Assembly: GCA_964188305.1 (NCBI GenBank)
Contig: OZ076892.1
Length of the DNA: 64,000 bases
Source: Podarcis bocagei
Lineage: Eukaryota
Reading direction: 5' to 3' (one strand)
The translations under genes and the position numbers were made by a program. The notes beneath the pieces are model-generated. The model searched no databases and was not told where the DNA came from. It saw only the letters and a program-made list of their open reading frames with translations. Position 1 is the first letter of the stretch. Every line of letters begins with the position of its first letter. Shown in pieces: positions 1 to 50,500 of the stretch.

Positions 1-270
1 CACTGGCGGGGTTGAAATAACTCTAACAGCGGGAAAGGCCTATGTAAAAGAGTTAAAAAGTACGCGACTATATAATTTATTCGATACTTACCAAAGGAAT
101 GGAGGGAAGTCCAAGGCTCAGTTGAGACTAACTCAGTTATATATTTTATCTATGATTTGTGAAGTGGATATAATTTGTATAAGGTATGTGGTGGATTTTT
201 TGTTTATGTTTTTCCTGTATATATGTGCAAATATGAATAAAAATTTATGGAAATATATATATATATATAA
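1..270 (+). mobile_element. 3' end of a LINE (L1-like 3'UTR), cut off by the window edge
   Basis: T-rich UTR-like sequence with AATAAA at about 236-241 followed by an A/TA-rich tail. Confidence 0.45.
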
Positions 271-394
271 TTAAGTGCTTTGCATGCAGAAGCTCCTAGA
301 TTCAATCCCCAGCATCTCCGGGCATACTGTATTTACAGGAGGAAAACAGGGCAGTTGCCCAGGGTGGCAAATTAAAGGAAGAGGCATTGCATTT

Positions 395-472
395 AATCTG
401 TTGGGAGCCGCCCAGAGTGGCTGGGAAACCCTGCTGGATGGGTAGGGTATAAATATATTATTATTATTATTA
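395..472 (+). mobile_element. L2-family 3' tail fragment
   Basis: gagccgcccagagtggctggg...gatgggtagggtataaat followed by (att)n, the typical lizard L2 terminus. Confidence 0.65.
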
Positions 473-997
473 CCACCTCCCCACTGCCCTGCAAGATAGC
501 TGCGTGAAGAGCACCTGAAGTGGTCAGAGGCCACACTGAGAGTGTCACTCAAAGGGTAGTTGCCCTTGAGCAAACTCCTCTCCTCAGAAGGAGGCGAGAA
601 GAAGGGCAGAAGGGCCTCCCATCCCCCATGCCCTTTGAGCCACACCAGCTGCATGCAGCCCCTGGACTGGTTCTTACTCTTGGCAAGAAGGCTGCCATCA
701 TGCACTGCAAGAGACAGTTCTGTGCACACCTTATTTCAGAGGCAGCAAACCTTTTCTGCTTGGGACAGAAGACAGAATAAATACATCACTGTATCCAGGT
801 AGAGGTGGGAAAGAATCCCCAGAGACCTGCTGTCAGTCATGTAGATACTCCTGAGCTATATGGACCAATAGTCTGATTTAAGATTAGGCATCTTCCTACA
901 TCCTGGCAGTCCTCCTTTGGACCTCCATTTTAGAACAAAAAGTTGTCTTTAATGCTTCTTCTTATTGGGCCAACATCTATTGGTGTATCACTGAGAC

Positions 998-1127
998 CAG
1001 GTGCACGGAACCTTTGGCCCTCCAGATGTTGCCAAACTGCAACTCCCATCAGCTCCAGAAAGCATGGCTGAAGACCAAGGATGGTGGGAGTTGTAGTTCG
1101 GCAACAACCTGAGGCTCCGCACATCTG
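998..1127. mobile_element. Palindromic hAT-type MITE (common squamate 'ggactacaactcccatc' family)
   Basis: Internal inverted arms caactcccatc / gtgggagttgtag. Related copies at about 1760-1860, 14417-14540, 16850-16900, 24233-24361, 40715-40805, 45785-45913, 52745-52882 and 60368-60422. Confidence 0.65.
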
Positions 1128-2263
1128 GTCTAGGCAAGGAGTTTTGTGTTACTCAAAAGCTACAGACATTGGTTCAGTTATAACAGAGAGCTTTGTCTTG
1201 CTGGGATCCTGCCAAGATACGCCACCCAGAAGAGCCTCTTTCTCATGCTTCATTGGGAGAACCCTTTTTTTTATTAACAAGATTTATCAGGTGCCTTTCC
1301 AAAAGATCAAGTCAACACACAGCAATTCTGTAAATATCATATTAAAATGCATGATTTGTTCAGGTGTAAGTGGTAGAACTCATCTGCTGTGGCATTTAAA
1401 CACAATTACTTCCAACTACAGACTTTTCTTTTATAACAAACAAAAAAAAATAGATGTGTGATTAAATCCCACAGGGCATTTAACTATGACCGAATGTATT
1501 AAGGTCCAGAGCTGAAAAAACACTCAAATTTCAAGCAGTGCATCCCCCCCCCCAATTTCTTAGTACCTGGTTGCTGAGGTTTTTTAAGCTGCTGAGTAAT
1601 TGCTAGAACACAAAACTCCCAAGACCAAGTCTCTTATTCATCCAATAGCTCTGAATCACCACTATTTATCAGTCTGCCCTACCTCATAGGGGTGTCATGA
1701 TAAATGTCAGCAACAGGAGTGGGAGAAAGAAAAAGCACACTCATACTCATTCACAGCCTCCCCAGGTGCTCTGGACCCCCACTTCTGCCAACACAGACAA
1801 TGGTGAGGGATGATGGGAGTTGTAGTCCAAAACACCTGGCAAGGTAGTTTTTGGTGATCTTTAAGGAGCCCTTTGCTCCCAGGGAGAAAGTGGCACATGA
1901 AAAGTAAATCAGCAGCAAAAACCACCAAACTGAAGCAACAAATTGCTCTGTTCATAAGAAAATGAGGAACAGCATCACATTTGTAAAGCTTTGCAGCCAG
2001 TTAAAAATTTAGCAGCCACTTCCAAAAAAAACTGTGCCCAAACTTCCCTATGGTTTACAGAGGGCCCTGAGCGAGACAGCTGCGATGCAAGACAGAAAGG
2101 ATCTAAGCTTGGAAAAGTCAGGGGGAAATGTTTTCCTCCCTTGCAACGTTCAGCAACTTGTCTCCAGAAATGGGAACATGCCAGGATATTAAATGAAGAT
2201 GCTGTCCAGAGCTATAGAGCCATTCTGCCATAAGAAGGATTGATGGCAACATAACAGCAAACG

Positions 2264-2360
2264 ACTCACCCAGCCCTTCTGCTGGGACTGCTTATTTTAT
2301 ATTATATATTTTATAGAGAGATATAAATGGAAAGGGCCCTCCTACATGCAACAGCAGCCA

Positions 2361-2405
<45 letters not shown>

Positions 2406-2604
2406 CAGACCGATAAGCCAGGCATGCAAGCTCTCTGAAGGGACATGCCGCCACCTCTTCCTACACGCTCCGGCCATAACCTCAAATACAAAACTTATTT
2501 TTAAAATGAACACAGGAGAGGACTCCAAAGCATTTCACTCTGTTCAAGCAAAATCCCCACCCCCACCCGCAATCAGGAACAGCTGCCATATTTGGGTGGG
2601 AATG
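2264..2604 (-). promoter_or_regulatory. Candidate muscle-type internal promoter/enhancer with splice donor
   Basis: E-box CAGCTG 2580-2585, CArG CCATATTTGG 2586-2595, MCAT GGAATG 2599-2604, CACCC boxes about 2556-2568, MEF2-like TTATTTTTAA 2495-2504, minus-strand CTATAAAA 2316-2309, donor TGG|GTGAGT at 2270/2269. Confidence 0.45.
2362..2402. repeat. (AC)n microsatellite, about 20 units
   Basis: Seen directly in the sequence. Confidence 0.97.
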
Positions 2605-3268
2605 ATCCAGAAACCAGAGACAGGTTTAGTGGGGGAGGCTTAAAAACGCAAAATCCAGCCTTAACAACCGCCTCGGCAGAAAATACTTGGAAGCATAGCA
2701 TAGAGCTTCAAATACAGAACGCGGAGAGGATGCCAGAGCGCTGGCTGGCTAGCTCTCACTTGGACAAAGGCGCAAACCTTTCCCTGATTCAGAGAAGCAA
2801 AAGCAGCAGGAGGAGGAAAGACTGGAGGGCAAAAGAAAAGGGAGGGCAGACACTAACTGCCTTGCAATAGGAGGGCCAGCATGTGGCCCTTTTCCTCACA
2901 CCAGCCTTCCCCAACATGGCACCTTCAGGATGCACTGACCTACAACTCCCGTCAGCCCCAGTCAGCACAGCCATACTGTAGTTCAAAAAATCTGGATGGT
3001 GCTACACTGGGAAGGGCCATTTTTAGACAGTAAATATGTGAGGGGAGGGGAGGGAGGTCTACCTCTTCCCACTCTTCATCTTAAGACTCTTACCAGATGC
3101 AGAAATGGATGGCTTGACAAAAGTACCTTCTTCCCATCTAGACCAATGAAAAGTTTTTGTGAACTTAAAAGCTTCTGTACCATTTTGTGACATTTGAGTT
3201 CGCCCAACAGAGAAACTAAATGTGTGTGTGTTTGGGGTGGAGAATGCCAGTCGGTGTTCCTATTCACA

Positions 3269-3480
3269 GGAGTCAGTGTGGTGTAGTGGTTAGAGTGCTG
3301 GGAAATCAGGCTTCAAATCCCCACTCAGCCATGATGCTCACTGGGTGTGGTCTTGGGCCAGCCACTCACTCTCAGCCTAACCTACCTCACAGGGTTATTG
3401 TGATTAAGAAATGGGGAGAAGCTTGTAGGCCGTATTGAGCTTCCTGGAGAAAGGTGGGATATAAATGGAATGAATGAATG
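3269..3480 (+). mobile_element. MIR-like CORE-SINE
   Basis: tRNA-like head gtggtgtagtggttagagtg...ttcaaatcccc, core ctcagcctaacctacctcacagggtt, (gaat)n tail. Other copies at about 26495-26640 (+) and 53335-53540 (-). Confidence 0.75.
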
Positions 3481-5223
3481 AGTGAATTTGGAAGCAAGTC
3501 CTGCAGAATTGCCCAGAAAATACACAGAATTCATCTGTTTGTTATTCTCTGCTTCCCTGCCCTCCTAATGATGCTACCAGGCTCTCATTTACAAGATGCT
3601 TCTCTCAAGACCCATTTCTAGTATCCTGTTCCCATTCTTCATGGTAAACCTGCTGACCTCTTTCTCCTACCTAACAGCTGGTTTATATTTTATCCAAGTG
3701 CAAATGCAACACACACATACACACTTGCAATAAATGTATCATGCAGACACACCAATTAGAAAGCCAGGAGAAGTCATGGCTTCTTGCCTAATGTACTTGC
3801 CCGTTCCCCCATCATGGCTAAAGTGAGAATGGAGGATTAGATCAGGAAAACAAGAGAGGGTGAGTGAGTGGTGGCGGCTAAACACTCTCTCCCTAGTGCA
3901 GTTCCAACAATCCAGTTTGGGGGCTCACAGCTGCTTTGCACCATATTAAAAAGTGGGAGGTCCTATCTCATACCCAGCAGCACAACATTTCGTTTGGCAA
4001 TGACCTCTCATAGCTTCTCTTCTCCCCTGTAGAACCAACCATGGCAACAGCTAAGAACACCTTCCATATACTTCCCTGGCTGTTTTGACCCTGGCGTGTT
4101 GAGCAAATATCTCCCACTCTGGGCACCATAGAACTGAGAATGTTTCCTATCAAATAGCTCTCTCTCCTCAGATAGCTCTCTCTCCTCAGACTCAGCTGGA
4201 CAGACTAAACCCAGAGCGATAATTCATGTCAGTTTGGCTTAGCTTGGCATCCCCTGCTCCCCCCCCCCTTTCTTCCTAATTACAGGTCTGAACTGTACAG
4301 TCTTGGCTGTGGGTGCTACAATTTTTCACTGAGAAAAACTCAGCCTTTTGCCCACAGTTGGAGACTGTTTTCCACATGTGAACTGAACACTACATCATAG
4401 CCCTTCTCAAGCCTCTGGCTACTTCTGCTTTTCTTGTTTTTGAAATGTGCAACTGTCTGAAGCGTGAGAAATTGCAACCAAGCCAAGTTCCTAGGCAGGG
4501 GGGTAGGGGGGAAAAACCAACGTCATGACAGTTTAAAAAGTACAAAAAACTAGCTTAGCTTGGTTGACAACTGTCAAAATCAGTATCCAAAAGAAAACAA
4601 TGCCCTTTTATAGATGTTTGGTGCTGCAAACAGACTTGGCACAAAAGCTTCTCTTTTCCAAACCCTTTCTTTACTTGGAGATTTAAATAAAAAGTTTTCA
4701 GCAACTTCTTTTCTTCTCTACGGATTCGAAAGAGCCTTGACTAGGCAGTTGGTTGGTTTTTATCATTTATGTAATGTTGTTAGCCGGAATTTGCCTTATA
4801 CCATTTCCCTCTTAGCAACACATTTTCCCATCTATGAGCTCTGCAGCTACCCACACTTAATCACAATCTTTCAGAAGAAAATGTATAATTTGCTTCTGAG
4901 TGCATGAACATAATGCTACTTGAATAAGTCAGTTCAAGACACTGAATATTTTTACGTAAGCAAGATAATGACAGGTTTGTTCTTGTTTGAAACCCTCCCC
5001 ACACCTGAAAAGAAAAAGAAACCCACCAACCCAACACTGTTTCTATCAAGACCATTAAATCTGCCTACAAAATGTAACCCCCTTTCAAAGGGAAGGAGAA
5101 GCCAAATTTTAACAAAAGGGGAAAAAAGTCAGGCATGCTTTGTACTCCAAATTACATCAGTCAGTCAACAATGGATTAACTCCTCACTTCCTCCCCAACT
5201 CCCTTCCTACAAAAAAAGTAATT

Positions 5224-8200
5224 TTATGTCTGATATGGCAGCGTGTGGGGACCAGGGGAAACAAATACCTCATTATCTGGAACCAATCCATCCGTTTCAG
5301 CAGGAGGCCCTTCAGCAACGAGGGAAGAAAAGGAGGTACTTTCTGAGTCTGGCACAGCAGAGGTCAGCTCCTCCTCTCCACTTGCAGGTGCTGCAGAAGA
5401 GGGCAGCTGTGCTGTGCTGCAAACTGTATCCCACACTGCTCCAGGTGCCAGAGAGAAACCAACTTCTGGTGGCTCTGGCACACCATCTGCACCCAATGGC
5501 ATAGAGATGGCAAGGCCTTTAATCGCTTGGGCCACCTGAACAGGCTCCTTGGTGGAGGTGGGCATTGTGGCATTGGCCAGCTCTTCCAGAGCAGGCCGTT
5601 CCTCTCTACTTAGAGGCATATTTTCCAAGGAGAATGGCACAGAAGCAGAGGACATCTCCTCTGCATTTGGTAAGAATGGTATCAGGTCCTCTGCTTTGGG
5701 CTCCGAAGTGACTCCTGGAAGACCATCTTGACCACAAACTTCTTTATACCTGGACATGCAGGCAGCATCCACAACAGGCCCCTCTGCCTCTGGGGTTGAA
5801 GCAAGTGAGGATGGCAAAGGCAGGGTGGAACATGTTACAGCTGCTGGACCATCAGTGATGGAAGGCCCCACTCCAGTAGAAGGAAAGGGGTCAACAAGCT
5901 TCTCTGGGCTATCTGGAGGGGCATCAAGAGTCTTGTCACTAGGGAGGGGACTGACAGAAGCAGATTCCTCTCCAAAAGAAGAGGCCAAGTCTTCTGAACT
6001 GGGCTGTGCAGCAAACAAATCTTCAACAAAAGCTTGTGAGTTGGTACACACAAACTTGGCACTACATTCCTCATCCTTTGTTATCTCACTGTCCCTGCTC
6101 TGCCCAAAAAGGAACTCCAAGTCTCCAGGTTCCAAGCAATATCTCTTCTCTTCCACTGGGCTGCCTTTGGCTGCTGCTCCCTGCTCAACTACCTCTGGTG
6201 TTTCCTCCTGGAGAAGGGCTGCACTTGCTGACACCTCTCCATCACACAGCAGCCTTGTTAAAGCCTCAGGTTGACATACAGCCTTCAAGTTCTCAGAGGA
6301 GCCTACATGTTTTAGAGGCTCCTCAGAGTCCTGCAATGCAAACTCCCTTTGTGAAGGCACCCAGGAACTATCTACATCCTCTATGTCACTAACGTGGCCC
6401 CCACAAAGGAGGTTTTCTTTATCCAGTTCTGCAACTTCATCCTCAGAAACCAGCTCTGGGACATCCCAGTTGGAGAAGTCAGTCCTTTCTGATGGGTTGA
6501 GCTCATCGCAAGCCTGCAGCTCTTTCCCCATAGCACTCATCATCTCTTTTGCCAAGTCAAAATCTGGTTGGGAGTCCAGCTCCTCAGCAGTTGTGGCAAG
6601 TTCATCATGGCTCGGGGATGCCTCCTTTGCTCCATAGCAAATGACAGGCTGCATTTGCTGCTGCTCATTTTCTCTGCCTATGGCAAGAACATGGATGCAA
6701 GGAGGTGGTTCTCTACAGCAAGGGAAATCAACTGAAGCCACAGGTTCACCCATGGCAAAGTCCAACAATCCTTTGACCCTCTGGCTTTCTGCAGGGTCAT
6801 GACCTGCCAACAGTTCTGCCCCATACTCCTCTATCTGACTAACTAAGGATGAGAGTGATTGTTGGGATACAGCATCTTTTTCAAGCGGAGGACTGGAAGA
6901 CGTCACCTTTTCAGAGTCACCAGAAGTTTCCCGTTCAGAGTAGCACTCTGAAAGGGTAGCTTCTGCTGTACTTACTGCTTGAGAACCACATGTGGCATCA
7001 AAGTCCTCCAGATCTGAGACCACAGCAGAGTCTGCCATGCTGACTTCAAGGTGAGTCAAGGGCTGGGAGGCTCCCGCCAAGTCCTTCTGCATGTCCAGCC
7101 CTTCTGAACACTGATTAGCATCCTGTACCTCCAGATCACCTGGAGCCACTCCATCCCCTCCTTCTTCGACCATGCAAAGCTTTTCTAGTTCAAGGAACAT
7201 CTGCACAGAATCCGTGTCAGAGAACTGCTCTGGGGCAAGAGAGATGGCACAGGCTTCTAGGCCAGAAGCAAATTCCTCCTCTTCAATTTCGGCTGCTACA
7301 GCTTCAGCATTGCAGGCACCAGCCTCCTCCTCCTCCTCAAGAGTAGCGTTTAAGTCTTGGTGCGTTTCCTGGGGAACGAGAGCAGAGTTGACAGCTCGCA
7401 GCTGTGAGTCATCCCACAGCTCTTGCCAGTGAGATGGGTGGTTAGAGGTCCCTTGGACACCAGCAAAACTCTCTACAGCTTCCGTAAGTGTCACGGCTGG
7501 AACACTTAATTGTTCCTTTTCTTCAGAAATATCTGTCAAGTAACAACTTCTTTTCTCAGCAGCCTTCCCTGACAGCAAGCCTTCCTCCCACTCCTCCCCA
7601 GCCTCCATCATGATCAATCGCTCATCCTCCTCAAACCTCAGCTCCGACTCAGTCTTTTCCCGGAGGTTGGGGGCGATGAGAATGCTCATCCCTGGGTCCA
7701 GGAGCTCTTCACTCAGGCAAGGAGACAGTGGCACTGTTTCTATGACACAGTCTGTGTTGTCTGCCTCCAAGGTGTCATGATGCCCACTGCCAAGGCCTGC
7801 TCTGATGGCATTTTTCATCACCCTTGGCCACGTGGCGCTCGAGAGCCTGTGGTCCCGCCGCCTGCCGCCGGTCAGGTCAACTACCATGTCCTCTGGTCCC
7901 AGAAGAGGCTGGCACTCATCCTGAGACAACTCACAGAAGGCTTCGCTTAGCTGCTTCACTTCCTGAATTTCTGGAACTCCAGACAGTTTGGGAATGTGCT
8001 CCAGGGTCAACGGTTCTGACATGCATTCCCCCTGGTCGGACTGCCTAGGGCTCTCTGCCAACATGGCAGTGGACTCCTGCTTCTCTTGCAAGGATGGGTT
8101 AGAAACTCCAGCTTCTGAGACTTCACTCAAGGAGGCCTCAATTCTCTCAGCAAACTCGGGGAAATTGGGTGGCATAAAGGACTTCCATGACCGCCTGTTG

Positions 8201-8580
8201 ACATTCTCCTTCTTCTCTGGGTTTGGCCGCCGCCTTGGGGGTGCCGGTGCTGACTTGGAGACATCACTGCTAAGTTTCAAGGCATCAAAAATGACCCTCT
8301 CGTCTAACTTTTTGCTCTCGGGTGCCTTTGATTCAAAGACACTGGGTGCCCCTAAAGTCCCATTGCTAGAGATTGTGCTGCCATCCCCTTTTTCAAGGGT
8401 ACTCTTGGAAGGCTGGCTAGTCTTGGACCCCTGATCAATTTGCTCATTTATCCTCATGGTGTCGTAGATGGACCTCTGAGGGACGTAACAGTCTTCTATA
8501 TACCCATCCTCATCCTCTCCTTTCCCCAAGCAAGCAGGACTCTGCCTTAAACAGTCAGGCCTGCTGAGTGGCTTGCCCAT
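5224..8580 (-). CDS. KIAA0754: KIAA0754-like single-exon ORF nested in the MACF1 intron (1118 aa from MGKPLS; acidic, mostly disordered); internal phase-0 donor at 5269
   Basis: Uninterrupted 3.36-kb ORF with a strong Kozak context (aagtATGG). The N-terminus MGKPLSRPDCLRQ...YVPQRSIYDTMRINEQIDQG and the position in this intron match what I recall of KIAA0754. The ORF-track start at 8652 is a TTG. Confidence 0.85.
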   Translation of the reverse strand: MGKPLSRPDCLRQSPACLGKGEDEDGYIEDCYVPQRSIYDTMRINEQIDQGSKTSQPSKSTLEKGDGSTISSNGTLGAPSVFESKAPESKKLDERVIFDALKLSSDVSKSAPAPPRRRPNPEKKENVNRRSWKSFMPPNFPEFAERIEASLSEVSEAGVSNPSLQEKQESTAMLAESPRQSDQGECMSEPLTLEHIPKLSGVPEIQEVKQLSEAFCELSQDECQPLLGPEDMVVDLTGGRRRDHRLSSATWPRVMKNAIRAGLGSGHHDTLEADNTDCVIETVPLSPCLSEELLDPGMSILIAPNLREKTESELRFEEDERLIMMEAGEEWEEGLLSGKAAEKRSCYLTDISEEKEQLSVPAVTLTEAVESFAGVQGTSNHPSHWQELWDDSQLRAVNSALVPQETHQDLNATLEEEEEAGACNAEAVAAEIEEEEFASGLEACAISLAPEQFSDTDSVQMFLELEKLCMVEEGGDGVAPGDLEVQDANQCSEGLDMQKDLAGASQPLTHLEVSMADSAVVSDLEDFDATCGSQAVSTAEATLSECYSERETSGDSEKVTSSSPPLEKDAVSQQSLSSLVSQIEEYGAELLAGHDPAESQRVKGLLDFAMGEPVASVDFPCCREPPPCIHVLAIGRENEQQQMQPVICYGAKEASPSHDELATTAEELDSQPDFDLAKEMMSAMGKELQACDELNPSERTDFSNWDVPELVSEDEVAELDKENLLCGGHVSDIEDVDSSWVPSQREFALQDSEEPLKHVGSSENLKAVCQPEALTRLLCDGEVSASAALLQEETPEVVEQGAAAKGSPVEEKRYCLEPGDLEFLFGQSRDSEITKDEECSAKFVCTNSQAFVEDLFAAQPSSEDLASSFGEESASVSPLPSDKTLDAPPDSPEKLVDPFPSTGVGPSITDGPAAVTCSTLPLPSSLASTPEAEGPVVDAACMSRYKEVCGQDGLPGVTSEPKAEDLIPFLPNAEEMSSASVPFSLENMPLSREERPALEELANATMPTSTKEPVQVAQAIKGLAISMPLGADGVPEPPEVGFSLAPGAVWDTVCSTAQLPSSAAPASGEEELTSAVPDSESTSFSSLVAEGPPAETDGLVPDNEVFVSPGPHTLPYQT

Positions 8581-8899
8581 ACTTTTCAAAACAATAAAAG
8601 AAAACAGAACAGAATAGAATGGGGGGACCCGCAAAGAAGAGTCCCACAACAAGCAAAAAAAAAACCGCTCCCCTGCCTCACAAGCTCTCCATTCAAAGCA
8701 AAAAGAAATAGATTACGGTGGAGCAGGGTGTCTTTTAAAAATCCCTAATAACGACTTGGGAGGCCACAATTTTGTATTCCACAGAAGTTACAGAGCTTTC
8801 CAGAGAGAAGTCATCTTCCACCGTGGAAGTCCTTGAAAGAGGCAAGGCATTCCATGGCTCCTGCGGAAACGCTAGCAGTCCAAGGCCAACACATAAAGC

Positions 8900-10630
8900 C
8901 GTTTTTGCCGATCGCTATTTGCAAGCCCTCCGCCTCCTCCGGTTGCTCGGTAGGGCTGTTCTCCTTAAGGCAAGTCTTCCAGCCCGCTCCGACAAAGCCT
9001 CTTCCAGAGGGCGCCCCGGTCGGAAGCTCAGCAGCAGCGGCGGCGAGGAAAAGGCCAGCTCTCGGGAAGGCGGCCGCAGAGCGCGCTCTCCTGGCGGAAC
9101 AAAGGCCCGGCCTCCCGCGCGCCTCCATGCCCGGGCAGAACTGCGCTTTGCAGAGGCTGCTTCGCCGGCCCCTCGGCGCGGCGCGGCTGGCTCGGACTGC
9201 GCCTGGCGGCGGAGATCCCTCGCGATCCCAGCGCAGGAAGTTCTTCATGCCGGGCGACGTCGGGCGCCTCCAATCTGCCCAGCATCCTCGGCCAGCGGGC
9301 GGGATAACTGGTTCAGCGCCGCTAGCAAAGGCCCTGGAAGGTAGGCGGGCAGATCTCCCCGTGCAGTCTGGAAGCGACCGGGGATCTCGTGGCGAAGTCT
9401 GCTCGGCGTTTCTCCCTCGCTCAAGGGCGGCGGCAGCCGGCGGACAGAAGCAGAGGCACCCCCGCAGGGAACGGGCCGGGACAGCCGGCTGCCGCTGTCC
9501 TCGCCGGGCTGCTCTCGGCTCCTACCATGCTCGGGCCGCGCAGACGTAGCTCTCCCCGCTTGCTCGCTCTCCAGGAGGGAAGTTTAGTTGGAGCCTTTTG
9601 TGCGTCGCGGCGGCGGCGGCAAGAGCGGGGCCCGCCTCCCCCGGCAGCCGTCCCCGCCGAGCCGAGCCGTGGGCTGCATGTCAAGCGAGCAGCAGGAGCA
9701 GGAGCCGCCGCCGCCCCCTCTTCTGTGCTCCCGAACGGGGCTGCAGCTGTCACGGCCCTTCTCAGCGCACAAACTTCTTGCCGGGGGAACAAAAGGCTGC
9801 GCGGCGAGGCTAGCTCGGATGGAGGGATGCAGAGCGCGCGACGGCTGGCTGGCTGGCAGGCCGCTCCTCTTGCTCGCCCTTGGAGGAGGCCGGCGGGGCG
9901 AGACCCAGCAGCAGTCCGCCCCCCGCCCGGGAAGCCCAACTCCGGCAGGAGAGCTCCGGCCCTCAGCGCCAACGGCTGCGAGATTCCGGCTGGGCCACCG
10001 AGCTGCCAACTCCGAGGGGAGGGGACGCGCCGAGTGGCGAGGAGGGAGAGAGGGGAGGGAGGAAGGAGGCGGGGACCAGCAGGCGAGGCGAGGCGGGGAG
10101 GAGGTAGGATGGGGGCGGCCTTAGTGAGCCCCAGGCGGGCTCGGCGAAGCCAACGGCCACGGGCGGATGGAGGCGCGGAAATCGAGCCCCGCCAGTCAAG
10201 GACCCGGCCGCTCAGCAGCGGAAAAGGCGGCTGGGCGCTGAGCCTGGTCCGCGGGGGAGAAAAGGAATATTGCTGGTTCAAGGGGAGAAACAACCCCTCC
10301 CGCGCCTTGTCTGGGTCTCCCCCTCCTCCTCTGCCCCCTTCGCCTGGGGCGGGGGTCGCAGCGCAAATCCCTTGACAAAGAGCAGCGACGTCTTGCTTCC
10401 CTCCAGCGCGCCCCTCCGCTGACTCCGGTTCGCGGAGGCCAAGACTTTTTTGAGGGGCGGGAGAGACGCCTTGCGATCAGCAACCGCCCGCACGACTGCC
10501 AGCGAATCTCTCCTGCAAACAACCGTCCCCCAAACCAGAGAAATATAAGGTTCTGCCTCGAGTAGCACACTGGTGCCGCAAAGATAGTAGAGACGTTTAG
10601 TTGGAGCGTGAGAACGCGCCGCTTGAACAT
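8900..10630. promoter_or_regulatory. CpG island; probable promoter and 5' leader of the KIAA0754-type transcript
   Basis: Very high GC content and dense CpG against a CpG-poor background; multiple GC boxes (GGGCGG, GGCGGGG); lies immediately upstream of the minus-strand ORF. Confidence 0.88.
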
Positions 10631-11270
10631 GTGCAGAGTGCAGAGCAAACAATCCTCACAAAGCTGCAATTTTCACTAGGGGGAGGAAATGATAGTACCT
10701 CACCACTGTCTTCCTCCTAGGCATACAAAACCACTATTATAAATTGCTGACGTTGGGTTTTTCCAGGAGAGGGCAGGGGAAATAACTTGCAGATGAGCTT
10801 ATTAATTTGATGGAGCAGGGGAGGTACCTGTGCAGAGTAAATCCCTCTTCCTTAGCTCTTATTTGCTATCCAGCAATTGGCTAAGGAGTTGCAGGTCATT
10901 TACAGCCTTACAGCTTTGACAACACTGTATGAAAGCATCCTCACTTCCATTTATTTTTTTTAAAGCACAGGTGTGCACGTCTAAGAAAACAGCAGGACAG
11001 GGTCAAGATGTGTCTTTATGTGGAAATATCTGCACAAAGGTATGCTAGGATATTTCAAATGGGGCTAAAGTTTCATAGTTGGATTTCAAAGGCGTTTGCC
11101 CGACATTTCCCTTGCAACACACCACCATAGGAGGGCCATAGCAAAGACCCAACATAACCTGCTTCTAACTACATGATAGGATTAAGCCCTGTGAAACGAA
11201 GAATAAAAGAGTTCCTCTTTTGGGGGCCTTTCTCACACAACATCACACCCACAACCAGCCCACATGGTAC

Positions 11271-31069: not shown

Positions 31070-32541
31070 CTTGAAATCTGCCAGCTGCTGGCTGATGACC
31101 TCCACTTCTGTCCCAACGACCCACTGCAAAGCTTCGCTGTCTTCGGCTGTGGCTGTCATGTAGTTCAGCTCCTTTAGTTTGTCATAGAAGTCCTTGACGC
31201 GAGCCAGCGTTGTGTCCACCTGCTCCAGGCGACTTTTGCCTCTTTCGTTCAGTTTGCCACATTGCTTATTTAAAGTCTCCAGCTCACGTTTCAACCCTAT
31301 GAGGTCGGGACTTCCTTCATCATCCAACATCTGCCTGCATTTCTCTTCAGAAGCTTGGATATCCAGCCTCAGCCTCTGAAGTTTGCCCAGGAATTCATGG
31401 ACATCCTCTGCTTGAGACTGCAGACTGTCCATGTCTCTCCCAACAGAGCCCATGCTGTCCAATTCGTCATCTAGGTCAGCCAGCTGAGAGAACATCTCCC
31501 GAACATGATTATTAAACTGGCCAATCCCTTCAAGCTTGCTCTCCATAAGTTGACAACATTCGTTAACTTTTTGCTTGACTGCTTTGAAGTCTTGCTGGGC
31601 GACCTCAGCTTGACTTAAGAGATGGGAGGAGTCGGACCCATCTGGAGCATCTTCCACCAGGCCCCGAGTGAAATTCCTCAGGTAATCCACCTGGGGTTCC
31701 AATGCCTGGATAACTTCCTGTTGGGCTCTCAGCTTCTCCAAGTTCTTAGTGCTGCAGGCCTGTGGGCCAAGAGCCTCATAGATTTCCAGCTGATGCTTTG
31801 TCCCATCTAGTTTCTTCTCAATGTTCCTAAAGCTTTCTTGGAACTCCTTCAGCCTTTGCGACATTTCTTCCAGGGAACCGGTCTTTGCTTGGAGTTCCTC
31901 TGTAATAGCGTCCATCTTCTGGTTGATCCCCGCTTTCTCATCCCTAACATCATCCTCATCCATTTCTGATGCATTGATGAGGATATCAGCGGCGCTGTTC
32001 AGCATCTCCAGAAGGGAGCGGCGCTTCTCCACATCGCTCAGCATAGCCTTTGACCTCAGGAGTGTGGCTTCCAGTTGCACTGGATCCAGAGTGACTTCCA
32101 GCTCTAGCATCTTTGACCTGCAGTCCTCCACCCACGGGAAAAGGTCTTCCACATGACGCTGGTATTTCTGAGCCTTCTGTAAGCAGTCCTTGAGTTTAGC
32201 ATGTCGGTCTGTGATCTGTTTGCTAAGCTCCTCCCAGTTTGCTTTCAGGTTGACCAGCTGGCTTTGCAAACTGGCTCTCTCCTCGCCGGGATGAATGGAG
32301 TGAAGCAAAGACTCGCCCTCTACCACAATCATTTCATAGGAGCCCCTGTGCTGGTTGAGGCTCTTTTGGAATTCTTCCTGCTCCTGGATCTGAGACTGCA
32401 GCCTCTCCAGCTTAGCTGAGATAGGCCCGCTCTGTGCCTGCTGCCTCAGCTTGTCATCCAGCCAAGTGTGGAGCTCATCAAACATCTGTTGGAATTGCTG
32501 GGAGCTGGCAAGCACTGTCTGCAATCGATTCATCCGGTCAC
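31070..32541 (-). CDS. MACF1: MACF1 exon, 1472 nt, (G)DRMNRLQ...SQQLADFK
   Basis: tttcag|GT acceptor, AAG|gtaagg donor, phase 1-0; several spectrin repeats. Confidence 0.97.
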
Positions 32542-35500
32542 CTGAAAATTGGAGGAGGCAGGAATACATTGTTAAGACATGCATTTCATAAAGCTAGGAA
32601 CCTCTCCTAATGTTCCTGATGCACAAACCTACATTCCAGTCTTTGTAAATAAGCACCTTTCAGTGAAAAAGCAAATTGGTATACCATTAAAGGTAAGGCA
32701 TTCTTATAAACCTAGGAAGCTACAAATCACAGAACATAGGGTCTATTCAGGGAAATTTAATTGATTCTGTAGGATCCCCAGAACATCTGTTTCCTTAAAA
32801 AAAGCTTTCTAGACCTTACATTTACATAGAGGCAGTGGTCAAAATGGGATGGGGTGGCATTCCAATTCTTTTTAGAAAGACAAAATGGAGCCCAGCTAAC
32901 CATCCCACTTCTTCTACTCATGCGTTAGGGAAAAATACACCTGAGAAGTGGCATTGGCTGGGGCTTCCTATTGGGCCTGTGTTGGTGACACACTGAGTTT
33001 GCTTCATAATGTGTGGAGTGGCCCTGAGGTTAAGCCTTTCATCACATCTGGTGAGCCAAGGATCTATTGGGTCCTTATTGCCCACACAACTTTCCTGGCT
33101 GTTGGGAGTCCTCCTTCTCGACTAAATGCTGTTTGTGTTTCTAAATTCTGCAAATGGTCTTATATAGTACCTGATGACCCCATGTTTTCAAATGATTCAT
33201 TTCCATACCTGCCAAATCTTCGAGCCCTTTGAGAGGGAGGGCCACTGTCTCCAAGCGCTTCTTCAGCTCATCCTTCAGGTACTGCTCCCCAATGAGGACT
33301 GAGAGCTCATCACATAGGGCCTGAGCCTCCGTGATCTCCTCTTCCAGCTGTGCCAGGTTGGACCGGATTTCACTCGTTTCTTCCAGCTGCTGCTTCACAG
33401 CCTCCGGCTGGGTGCTGATGGTGGACTGGGTGCTCAGGCACTGCCCAGCAGCCTTCACCTTCTCAGACAGGCCCTGGAGCAGCTCTTGGTACTGGGTGCT
33501 CTTGACAATGGCCTGGTCGATTTGGCTGGAGCGTGAGTTGAGCCTCTCTGTGAGTTCAGTCCACTTCTGGTTGACAGCCTGGAGCTCCTCCTGCATGTTA
33601 CTGATGGATGGAGACCCTTCGCTGGGGCTGGTGAGTATCCCTTGCGCAGCCTCATTCAGCTGATCATACTGGGGCTTGCGGGACTCAAACTCCTTCAGCA
33701 TAAACTAAAATGGGGGAGGGTGGTAGAGAAACAATGCATAGGTTTTTTAATGAGAGACCAAGATGGTTAAAAAAAAAGATGAAAGAAGCCAAGGAGAATG
33801 CAACCATAGCACTGTCAGTCTTGGTTGCATAATAAAACACTTTTTTTAAAGCACCAAAAGAATGGCTGCCTTCTTTTTTTTTTAATATAATTTTTATTAA
33901 CAGGCCAATCAAATCACATTAATTCCAAATCACATTAATTCCAAATTATACAGCCAGATTTTTAAATTTTTGTTGGGGGTACCCATACATCAAGCTCCGA
34001 AAGGGGACCAAGAATGGCTGCCTTCCTAAACCTGATGAAAATAATGACTTCATGTTACTACTGGGCCATTTACTATTATATACTGGCATTAACAGCCCGG
34101 GACCAGTTTACTTATAGGATCACCCTATATATGCCCACTCAGCTGCTTCGAACTGTGGAACTGATACTGTTACAAGTGCCGCATAATGCTCATTCTGCAA
34201 TAAATCAATTTTTAGAGTGGCAGCACTTACACTTTGAAATTCCCTGCCCATTGACATCAGGCTGTACAATTTCTGGTGCCTCCTTACTTGCTTTTAACTG
34301 CTTTTATTGATAACTTTAATGTTTCTTTTAATTTTTGTAAAACCACTTAGGAGGTGCTTTGTTTTTTACAATCAAGCAGCACATATGTGATGTGATGTAA
34401 GCAATGCCTTTCCTGAGAATATCAGTGGTTTCCAAACTTCCCATTTTCACATTAATTAATCTGAGAACACGTTCTACCCCTCAATACACTGCAAAGGATT
34501 CTAGGGCGGAGGTGGACTTCAGGCTTGTTGGATCTAATCTGTTTTTTCACCAGAACCCCAAGATCTACCAATGAGAGCCGGGTGCAAAAGACATGCAGGG
34601 TGCCTCCAGACATTCCCTATTTGGGGCATTTAAAGTGGATTAAAGGGTTCAGTCACCCAAGTGCAACAAATCCATTTTTTACACAAACTCCAATTTATAA
34701 AACAAGTCCCACTTTGCAGCACAGAAAATGATGGGGAAAACTGTGGGATGAATGATTGACTAAGAGGAAGATGTATAAACCCCCTGGAAGCAAATCAGGG
34801 TGAATGCAGAAGAAATGCTAAATGGCATATATACAAATAAATCAGAAGGAGTACACAATGAAGACCAGACATAGTTGAACCACGATGTAAACAAATTAAT
34901 ATGAGTGCTGAATAAATAGAATGTCTGGAGGAGCCCATGGTTAGAATTAAATACCAGGGTGCCTCTGAGCTTATTCTTTTCCGAGCTCAGTCCTTTTGCA
35001 CAAAAAATCCACTCCCTGTTAGCCATCTCCATTTCAGCAGCCTAAATTAGGTGAGAAAAGTCATTTTGTTGTTGCTAATGTTGAACAACTGAGAGATCAA
35101 CCAGTTGCTGACCCCTGTTCCAGGACACACTCTTGGTTCTTGCAAGTGCTCCAGATAGCCTCACATGACCCGAGTGGATCCTGGAGCACACCTAACATTT
35201 CCCTGAGAGTGCACACTGGAAGGTAAGTGGTAAACGAAAGCTTGCCTGCCATGCCTGATTTGATTCTGAATGAGAAACCCCTGATAAGCTTCCAAGGAAG
35301 TCCAAGGCTCCTTGGAAAGCTGAGGTCTGAGCAATGAGGCAGCCAAAGATGAACTGTCCTCTTCATTGAGGAAGATACATCCAATGAGCTGCAAAGGAAT
35401 GTGATGTCAGCTGATGAATCAATTAAACAAGTTAGTCTGCTGCAAGAGTTTAGGTTGGCTGACACACAACTAAAAGCATATTGAGTTGCTATAAACCATC

Positions 35501-47500: not shown

Positions 47501-50500
47501 TGTTGCCGTTTCAGAGGAAACTAGCCCCTATTCAGACCATCAACCCAGATGCAGTGACGCTCTTCTGTTTATGTTGTTGTGATCTCCCTCCCTCAAGAGC
47601 ACATCTTCCCTAGCAGGCTCTGGGACTCTTTCCTTCTTTCTCTGCCCACCTCAATTTGCTGCATCCGCTTCTCCAACTCATGGGTGCCCAAAGAAGCCTC
47701 TGTGGCTGGGATAGTCGCCTCTGTTTCTTTCAGCCACTGCTTCGTGGATTCAACCAGTTTTCGGAATTCGTCCAACTGTTCTTGGCAGGAAGATGCGCCC
47801 TTCTCTCTGGGAAGTAGAGAGAAAGGTGGCAGGTAAAAAAGTGGGCCAGCTCTGCTAGCCCTTTTCCTAGCATGTATTCCATCAGATGAATTCTAAGTCA
47901 CCGAGAAGTCTGCAACCACAGCAGGCTCAACCTCAACTCCTGCTCCCAAAATGTGTTGGGCTGCTGTGTAAGGAATTATGAGAAAAACAATGTCCAAAGT
48001 ACACTTAACAGCTGCATATATGCCAAGTATTGTTACTGCTCCTTCTGCAACACTGGACCACCTACAGTGGTGCCCCGCAAGACGAACGCCTTGCAAGACG
48101 GAAAACCCGCTAGACGAAAGGGTTTTCCATTTTGGAGGCGCTTCGCAAAACGAATTTCCCTATGGGCTTCCTTCGCAAGATGAAAGCCCATAGGGAAATC
48201 TCCGGGACAGCGGGGAAGCGCAGCGCTTCTTCCCCACTGTCCTCGGACCTCCTCCGAAGGCTGGCAGTGGGGCGGAAAGCCCTTCTCCCCGCACCAGCCT
48301 TCGGAAGGCTCCTCCAAAGGCTGGCGGTGGGGCGGAAAGCCCTTCTCCCCGTGCCAGCCTTCGGAAGGCTCCTCCGAAGGCTGGCGGTGGGGAGAAAAGC
48401 CCTTCTCCCCACGCCAGCCTTCGGATGGCTGTCCTGAAGACTTGCGGTGGGAGGAGGGTTTTCCTTCCCACCGCCAACATTCAGAATGCTGTTCTGAATG
48501 TTGGCGGTGGGGAGGAAAAACCCTCCTCCCACCGCAAGCCCCGGGAACAGAGGAGAAGCGCTGCGCCCCTTCCCCTCTGTTCCCGTACCTGTCCTGAAGG
48601 CTTGCGGTGGGGAGAAAAGCCCTTCTCCGCACCGCCAGCCTGGCAAGCGGTTTCCATAGGAACACATTAATTGATTTTCAATGCATTCCTATGGGAAACC
48701 GTGCTTCGCAAGACGAAAAACTCGCAAGAAGAAAAAACTTGCGGAACGAATTAATTTCGTCTTGCGAGGCACCACTGTATTTGGGACATTGTTGCTCAGT
48801 CCAATGGATTAAGGACTGAAAGGAAATCTCAGCCTCTTCATGCTCTGTTCTTCGTTCCTGGCTGATCAGGCCCTAACAAGGTTATCCACCCACCACAGAA
48901 AAGTGAGCAGACGTTTAGACTAAGTTCTCCTGTTAAGTAAATTCTGCCAAAGCCAACCACCACCTCCCAGTCATGCTGAGAAAACACTGAGGCAGAGATG
49001 GTCTACACCCTTCCCGAAACCTTCAAGTTATCAAAATGTCAGTTTATGACAGCTTTGTTCTTCAACCTTCTCTCTGCCTCTGTCTCTGGTGTGAGGTAAG
49101 TAGGTTTTAACTCACTACCACCATCAAAGAAAGAAAATAAACTTGGTGTTCCCAGGAAAAGCATTGCCTTGACATGTCTTTGTCAGGCTGTGACTTTAGA
49201 CAGGGGGGTTCTCCATCTTTGTGGTCCCAGGGACACATTTGGAAACCTAAGAAGCTATCACAGGCACGAGAAAACACTCATTCCATAGAAGAAAAACTGA
49301 TGATGCTCAGACATCCTCCATTCCAAAGAAAAGACAACTTTCCCCCCACCCAAAAAAAAGCAGACAACTCCCTCCAAAACATGACCTCTGGAAAAAAGTC
49401 AAAGCAGCCCTCATTAAAAACAAAACAACAACAACGAACGAGAACCAAGCTTTAGATACATGTTGGTTCTGACATTCCTTCTCCAACTGGTGTGAATTTC
49501 TATTGAGCAAAAATTCACGACTAAGCACCAGCCACATTGTTTGGAAACCACACTGGCAGGAAAGGAATTAAGTTGTAAAAGGAGCCATATTACGAAGCTG
49601 GATCTTGGCCCCCTTCCAAACATGCCCTCCACCTCCGCAAAGGACAAGATGCAGGGCCACTTGCACTGTCTCTTGTGCATGTGGCACAACCCTCGGTCCT
49701 TCTGCATGCAAAGCAGATGCTCTACCCCTGAGCTGCAGAGTGTCTGCTCATCACCACCTTTGTATCACAGAGCAGCAAAGAGCACCCCTTACCGTTCCCT
49801 TGCTGCTTTCTGTAACTGCATGAAGTCTTTCCGCAAACTGTGCACCTTCTCCTGGTGTGAGGAGGAGCTTGCTGCTGCAAAACCACAAGAGCTCAGCTCC
49901 GTGGTCAGATGTTCCAATGTGTCTAAGTCCTCGTGGTGCTGCTTCATCTCAGAATTCAATTCCTGGCAACAAAGCAGGGGTGGATGGAATGTTGCCATTA
50001 GAACAAAGAGCAGTGTCCAACACACAGGTCCAAGTTGGTCCTCTGGGACAAATTCACTACAGAAAGCCGCCAGTGGAGACTGCACAGCTCATGTCAGCTC
50101 CTGGAAGCCATGTGTGACTAGGGGTGTTGTGGGGAGGCAGAAGGGATATGCATGTGTGTGTGTATGTGCGAAGAATTTTTATTCAGATCATGCTGAAAGG
50201 CAATTATACCAAATTTGCACTTCCCAAAACAACACACAAGCCAAAATGCAGCCATCCTTTGAAATTCACACTTCTCTAAATTTTGCATATATGAGGTAAA
50301 GTGAGCATTAAAAGGCTCCTATTAGTGAAAGTCAATTGTCAATATTTGGTTTGATTGTACTGCTAGCCACTTTGAGCTTCCAACGAGGAAAGGTGGAGTA
50401 CAGAACTATTAAGTAAAGGCCAATTTGAGGGCCATATTCCTTCCTTGTTAACATTTAGGGGCCACATGCTAGCAACGGGCAGGGCCAATGCAAAAGGCAG

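Follow-up and report, generated by a model that had tools for sequence, protein, structure and literature searches.

The short products of the dystrophin gene (Dp260, Dp140, Dp116 and Dp71) and the short nesprins are made from intronic promoters, each through a unique first exon spliced in frame into the distal rod, and are C-terminal products without the N-terminal actin-binding domain; the unique first exons of dystrophin encode few residues. Both spectraplakin genes, MACF1 and dystonin, are linked to disease (among others to lissencephaly 9, epilepsy and the neuropathy HSAN6), and knock-outs and the interpretation of variants as a rule take into account only the long isoforms, in which the actin-binding domain comes first. 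The stretch of 64,000 nucleotides of the lizard Podarcis bocagei analysed here (assembly GCA_964188305.1, contig OZ076892.1; referred to below as the window) very probably carries, on its minus strand, an exon orthologous to the KIAA0754-type one of MACF1, with which a short isoform known as 'isoforms 6/7' begins. In contrast to the dystrophin short isoforms, this isoform takes more than 1,100 residues, among them a conserved N-terminal motif, from its first exon.

Loss of the actin-binding domain has been described before in MACF1, for the isoforms MACF1c and MACF1-4 (PMC4914211). They resemble the present isoform in having no calponin-homology actin-binding domain and in keeping rod, EF-hands and GAR domain, but they retain the plakin domain and the whole rod, and MACF1-4 also has plectin repeats, whereas the present isoform, made from an internal promoter, joins the canonical protein only some 3,220 residues from its N-terminus, behind a unique head of 1,104 residues. 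Reviews of MACF1 isoforms list six and omit the KIAA0754-type one (PMC4914211; PMC11989829); the exon is mentioned in a review of 2017 (bioRxiv 10.1101/122010). The short isoform is nonetheless real, ancient and already known, with entries for mouse and human under the name 'MACF1 isoforms 6/7'. The lizard head is orthologous to that of the MACF1 isoform 6 type (its first 462 residues are 57% identical, and both begin MGKPLSRPDCL), and it joins the MACF1 rod at the same position, through the same phase-0 junction into xFQKEQVDPLQ. It differs in length, as it has 1104 residues and the primate heads about 1,340-1,400, in its C-terminal half, which aligns poorly, in the junction itself (VPDNE against NSDE), and in that no clear stand-alone 'isoform 7' is found in the lizard RNA. 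The parts of the locus are as follows.

5269 to 8580, minus strand: coding part of the alternative first exon, 1104 codons, from the ATG (MGKPLSRPDCL...) to ...GLVPDNE
8581 to 10022, minus strand: 5' untranslated part of the first exon, up to 1442 nt, with RNA contig X3 unbroken to 10022
8750 to 10500, no strand: CpG island and internal promoter region, GC 0.63-0.72, CpG observed/expected 0.72-0.90
5260 to 5268, minus strand: first intron bases past the donor, GAG/GTATTTGTT, which is weak but conserved
1 to 5259, minus strand: intron that follows the alternative exon; its acceptor exon (TFQKEQ...) lies outside the window
31070 to 32548, minus strand: last canonical MACF1 exon before the shared acceptor, 494 residues, ending ...QQLADFK/gtaagg in phase 0

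The minus-strand frame from 8580 to 5269 is free of stops over 3312 nt, or 1104 codons (open reading frame (ORF) list and translation), and ends in ...GAT AAT GAG/GTATTTGT, in which 5269 is the last exon base and the GT stands at a codon boundary, in phase 0. Beyond the GT at 5268 the read-through frame has only 14 more codons before a stop at 5224. RNA from four runs of close relatives, mapped on positions 4550-10500, shows the fate of this boundary: the fit of the main contigs, X1 from organism A and X3 and X11 from organism B, ends exactly at 5269, and X1 and X3 share identical loose ends of 28 nt, the reverse complement of which, ACGTTCCAGAAGGAGCAAGTTGACCCAC, reads TFQKEQVDP in the frame of the ORF. 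In MACF1 of Podarcis muralis, P. raffonei and Zootoca the boundary LADFK/TFQKEQVDPLQ lies at residues 3223/3224, and the exon in the window agrees with these proteins as far as LADFK. The 28 loose nucleotides are the start of the next canonical exon, and the alternative exon and the exon ending in ...LADFK therefore share one phase-0 acceptor. An overhang of this length, shorter than the k of 31, is what an assembly-graph branch at a shared exon would be expected to leave. The alternative first exon is spliced from GAG/gtattt, in phase 0, to the TFQKEQVDP exon. In the raw read pairs of X24 the first mate is always on the plus strand, which fits minus-strand RNA in a standard stranded library.

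The transcribed exon exceeds the ORF and forms a single first exon of about 4.75 kb, 5269-10022, without a joint in contig X3. The 5' ends of the contigs fall at 10022 (X3), 9093 (X11) and 9047 (X1), and transcription starts inside the CpG island, between about 9050 and 10022. The island is sharply set off from its surroundings: positions 9001-10000 have a GC content of 0.71 and 115 CpG, with an observed/expected ratio of 0.90, and the ratio is 0.72 in 10001-11000 and about 0.1-0.3 in the remaining window. The island and the unbroken contig establish the KIAA0754-type exon as a first exon with its own promoter and not an internal cassette. One candidate joint, ...ttttgaaaag/tATG near 8583 as a 3' splice site preceded by a non-coding exon 1 in the CpG island, was rejected, X3 passing straight through it to 10022. 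Relatives show many small indels within the leader, 8581-10022.

The canonical gene surrounds this exon on the same strand. A tblastn search with the 5505-residue MACF1 of Podarcis muralis (P0281) returned 17 exon hits on the minus strand, running from 56158 down to 31070, which together span residues 1550-3223 with 88-100% identity (at least 91% in all but one). The last of these covers residues 2730-3223 at 31070..32548 with 99% identity, and its end at 31070, ...CAG CTG GCA GAT TTC AAG/gtaagg, is read in the sole open frame there. From there it is another 21 kb downstream to the KIAA0754-type exon, and the MACF1 intron around it exceeds 31 kb. MACF1 residues past 3223 gave no match in the window by tblastn, and 1-5268 holds no plausible ORF for the next MACF1 exon; at the corresponding skink locus (L001) no xFQKEQ exon was found within 10 kb downstream. 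In the assembly of that skink, Lerista edwardsae, the head is annotated as an unrelated 'hypothetical protein' and the distal 2,299 MACF1 residues as a separate gene, whose first exon at L001:22681-22740 (MSLWKRKG...) has the look of a spurious ab initio prediction.

Judged from its letters only, the donor at 5269 is no better than chance, and its support comes from RNA and orthologues; in a simple donor weight matrix it ranks 18th of the 268 GT sites between 9000 and 4000. The site itself, GAG/GTATTTGTTTC, is strictly kept between this lizard and the skink: window 5258-5289 (minus strand) and L001:13346-13377 are identical over the 21 nt before and the 11 nt after the junction. Across wider distances phmmer searches returned homologues of the head (E = 0 to 1e-140) under the names 'KIAA0754 homolog' and 'MACF1, isoforms 6/7', with 40-65% identity from squamates to hagfish and 54-65% within squamates. 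Head proteins of about 1,100 residues occur in squamates, turtles, birds, mammals, frogs and coelacanth, and fused models of about 3,100-3,400 residues, in which the head is followed by Spectrin, EF-hand and GAS2 domains, in wombat, crane, tortoise, turtle, crocodile, rattlesnake, Xenopus and many fish; in a hagfish model of 1,899 residues the head is joined to spectrin repeats. A mammalian contig of 11.5 kb (L004) leads from a MACF1-type head through spectrin repeats and EF-hands to GAS2, with one frame break. Equivalent junctions between head and rod are found in mammals, frog, fish and hagfish, and the residues at the joint are the following.

Gekko: VPDNE/TFQKEQ
Snakes (Crotalus, Thamnophis): VPDNE/QFQKEQ
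Anolis: VPDKE/LFQKEQ
Birds: VPDNE/LFQKEQ
Primates: NSDE/MFQKEQ

A suboptimal donor, with T at +5, has been retained over hundreds of millions of years, perhaps a sign that its splicing is regulated.

The preliminary description of this DNA, drawn from its letters alone, had proposed much of this structure. Its AAT GAG/gtattt, in phase 0 at 5269/5268, is present as described, and the phase-0 end that it gave the upstream exon (...LADFK/gtaagg, 31070) follows from the sequence and the frame. Its claim that both donors would fit one downstream acceptor is borne out by the overhang of X1 and X3, which is the ...LADFK/TFQKEQVDPLQ exon, and the separate CpG island that it assigned to the ORF is evident in both GC and CpG observed/expected. 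Among the checks that it named are junction reads that join 5269 to the next MACF1 exon, for which the X1 and X3 contigs of relatives, which read TFQKEQVDP, stand in here, and conservation of the donor, the position and phase of which are kept in orthologue models of squamates, birds and mammals. The inference of a KIAA0754-type MACF1 first exon was correct and directly testable.

The ATG at 8580, with A at -3 and G at +4, is the probable translation start, judging from its strong conservation. Head residues 1-48 are almost unchanged from hagfish to human in both spectraplakin paralogues, and an alignment of 30 MACF1-type and dystonin (DST)-type sequences has 38 invariant columns, which include M1 G2 K3 P4 L5 S6, C10, C17, C31 and Y32-T41. 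Between the ORF and organism A, 13 of the 25 substitutions are at third codon positions, for a pN/pS of about 0.38, on small numbers; among the relatives the ORF shows a single indel, of 6 nt, and the leader indels of 1-5 nt. The head is acidic (pI 4.17; 215 D+E against 77 K+R). A Pfam search found no domain, a sequence search of the PDB no match, and a search of the ESM Atlas only scores at noise level (at most 0.79). AlphaFold, given residues 1-230 in the 30-sequence alignment, predicts a mostly disordered chain (pLDDT 52.9, pTM 0.20) with short helices only at 38-49, 94-101 and 141-152.

The same arrangement exists in the second spectraplakin gene. A short dystonin isoform (P0231-P0258) begins with the homologous N-terminal module, MGKPLSRPDCLRQNP..., has a head of about 400-430 residues, and is joined at the paralogous exon, xFQKEE(I/V)EPLQ; two independent 10-kb Logan RNA contigs of the DST type (L002:1024-9096 and L003:1091-9163) each hold an uninterrupted ORF of 2,690 codons. 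It shares with the MACF1 isoform the invariant N-terminal module, the paralogous junction, the spectrin repeats, EF-hands and GAS2 domain and the lack of calponin-homology and plakin domains, and differs in belonging to another gene and in size, its head of about 400-430 residues leading a protein of about 2,600-2,700. Given the homologous head and the paralogous junction, the arrangement therefore predates the duplication that separated MACF1 and dystonin. In a search for head homologues outside vertebrates, the weak representatives that were checked all proved to be vertebrate. In teleosts, several proteins of 1,150-1,690 residues without a Pfam domain (P0263, P0382, P0383 of Oryzias, LOC105356979, and P0133 of Oncorhynchus, LOC118399232) carry the module MGKPLSRP...YIPQRSIYDT; these could be separately annotated heads of macf1/dst duplicates, or a third gene family with the same N-terminus.

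What the isoform would consist of in the lizard can be predicted from the Podarcis protein together with the full-length models and contigs of other species. Within residues 3223-5505 of Podarcis MACF1, Pfam matches spectrin 15 times and finds a pair of EF-hands and one GAS2 domain; a SKIP motif stands at the C-terminus. The product would have about 3,386 residues, namely the 1104-residue head followed by 2,282 residues (3224-5505), and is predicted to lack calponin-homology and plakin domains and to keep about 15 spectrin repeats, the EF-hands and the GAR/GAS2 domain. Such a protein would retain binding to microtubules and EB proteins, through GAR/GAS2 and a SKIP motif of the EB-binding type, and would not bind F-actin through an N-terminal domain. 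Its N-terminus, M-G-K-P-L-S (M-G-x-x-x-S) with Cys10, Cys17 and Cys31, fits a signal for N-myristoylation plus palmitoylation. An acylation-type N-terminus, coupled with the loss of N-terminal F-actin binding, would make a tether to membranes or to partners of the head the most likely role, so that the isoform may link microtubules to these instead of to actin. A lipid-anchored spectraplakin that binds microtubules and EB proteins is the mechanism preferred here. There is a partial precedent in the type-3 N-termini of dystonin and MACF1, for which myristoylation or palmitoylation sites have been proposed (bioRxiv 10.1101/122010). These likewise are predicted leads of the lipid-anchor type on a spectraplakin, but they stand near the gene's 5' end, ahead of half an actin-binding domain, whereas the present motif heads an isoform from an internal promoter, and the two are unrelated in sequence as far as compared. 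MACF1 also appears in a myristoylome paper, but the case there is the post-translational myristoylation of a caspase fragment at G5087, another N-terminus. A wider proposal is offered tentatively, with confidence a little short of even: that the KIAA0754-type head and its intronic promoter are an ancestral vertebrate module, present from hagfish and in both MACF1 and dystonin, which gives rise to dually acylated, membrane-anchored spectraplakins that bind microtubules and not actin. These would form a functional class of their own, one that studies have so far not taken up and that reviews of isoforms pass over.

On the protein, too, the preliminary description has held up in most respects. 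The roughly 1104 acidic, disordered residues that it foresaw agree with the pI of 4.17, the absence of Pfam domains and the AlphaFold prediction for the first 230 residues. Where it had the head fused to the distal rod, EF-hands and GAR domain, the in-frame splice into MACF1 is seen and the 3' continuity in the lizard is drawn from other species. The different kind of microtubule tether that it envisaged is likewise a prediction. Its guess that such transcripts might already be annotated was right, there being both curated and automated entries named 'MACF1, isoforms 6/7', and its statement that no functional description was known agrees with the literature search, in which none was found for the KIAA0754-type isoform and each of the 36 papers mentioning KIAA0754 named it in gene lists.

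Several points weigh against reading the locus as a spliced and translated first exon of MACF1. The donor is weak by consensus. The RNA comes from close relatives with a 31-mer share of 0.56-0.66 and not from P. bocagei, the junction rests on assembled contigs and not on single molecules, and the next exon is visible for 28 nt only, with the connectivity of the lizard transcript towards its 3' end inferred. No protein with the head, stand-alone or fused, was returned from Podarcis, Zootoca or other lacertids. On the side of translation, literature searches found no protein-level evidence for the head, a human (HeLa) N-myristoylome data set does not list KIAA0754, and the long leader with its upstream ATGs may limit translation. 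Three other explanations of the locus can be measured against these points.

The one that survives best, though improbable, is that the ORF is a stand-alone, nested KIAA0754 homologue, in which reading through the GT at 5268 yields about 1118 residues with no MACF1 part, as in the mouse 'isoform 7'. Many stand-alone models of about 1,100 residues in the databases do end ...VPDNEVFVS..., among them a RefSeq 'uncharacterized protein KIAA0754 homolog', and the mouse entry called 'Isoform 7' (NP_001161390.1) is a model of this kind; many such models, however, come from gene callers that are blind to splicing. Past 'VFV' the tails vary in length and sequence between clades, and the read-through tail is therefore not under coding constraint. 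(The tails start with 'VFV' in turtles, birds and squamates and with 'VIV' in mammals.) The RNA offers this explanation two contigs of low depth (2.2) in X11, at 4663-4812 and 4915-5062, but coverage between 4550 and 5146 is about 1 where the exon has 40 (X11), a level that intronic pre-mRNA alone would account for, and the main contigs of three runs break at 5269 and continue into the MACF1 exon. Nor is there an AATAAA or ATTAAA from 5268 down to 2500, a distance of 2.7 kb, at which a read-through transcript could end. The main product in lizards is the spliced form; a minor read-through form is possible, contigs dropping rare variants.

Less probable still is that transcripts do start at the internal promoter and are spliced in this way, but that the upstream ATGs of the leader keep the long head untranslated or poorly translated, so that the RNA would be non-coding or regulatory or would yield a truncated MACF1 from a downstream methionine. 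The leader (8581-10022, minus strand) does contain 5-10 upstream ATGs, with short upstream ORFs of up to 145 codons, and the ATG within GCCATGG at 8855 is in good context; to this is added the lack of protein-level evidence in the literature searches. All of the upstream ORFs nevertheless close before the main ATG, which itself has A at -3 and G at +4. A frame open over 1104 codons, the near invariance of residues 1-48 from hagfish to human in both paralogues, the third-position bias of substitutions with a pN/pS of 0.38, and indels that stay in frame in the ORF and are of arbitrary length in the untranslated region all speak for translation. That the junction is an artefact of assembly, produced by chimeric de Bruijn contigs, is hardly credible, for although the evidence is contig-based and none of the 12 raw reads obtained from X24 crosses 5269, the same break and 28-nt overhang recur in runs of two species from two studies, the break stands exactly at the GT, the overhang, which is in frame, matches the exon that comes next in the canonical transcript, and independent gene models and contigs of other vertebrates have this junction too.

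With the locus read as a spliced first exon of MACF1, the interest that remains lies in an ancient and strongly conserved isoform of both spectraplakin paralogues without a described function, made from an internal promoter and kept for some 500 million years in both genes. Mutations in the distal rod, EF-hands or GAR domain would hit two classes of protein and 5' mutations would spare the short one, and conditional alleles aimed at 5' exons would leave the short isoform intact. The isoform is apparently unannotated in lacertids, though annotated in mouse and human; MACF1 isoforms X16-X29 of lacertids are in the database, and the short isoform seems to be missing from this set. The window holds a second CpG-rich patch at 48001-49000 (GC 0.55, 49 CpG, observed/expected 0.66), which is intronic, between the MACF1 exons 49792-49968 and 47647-47808, and may be either a repeat or a further regulatory element inside the gene.

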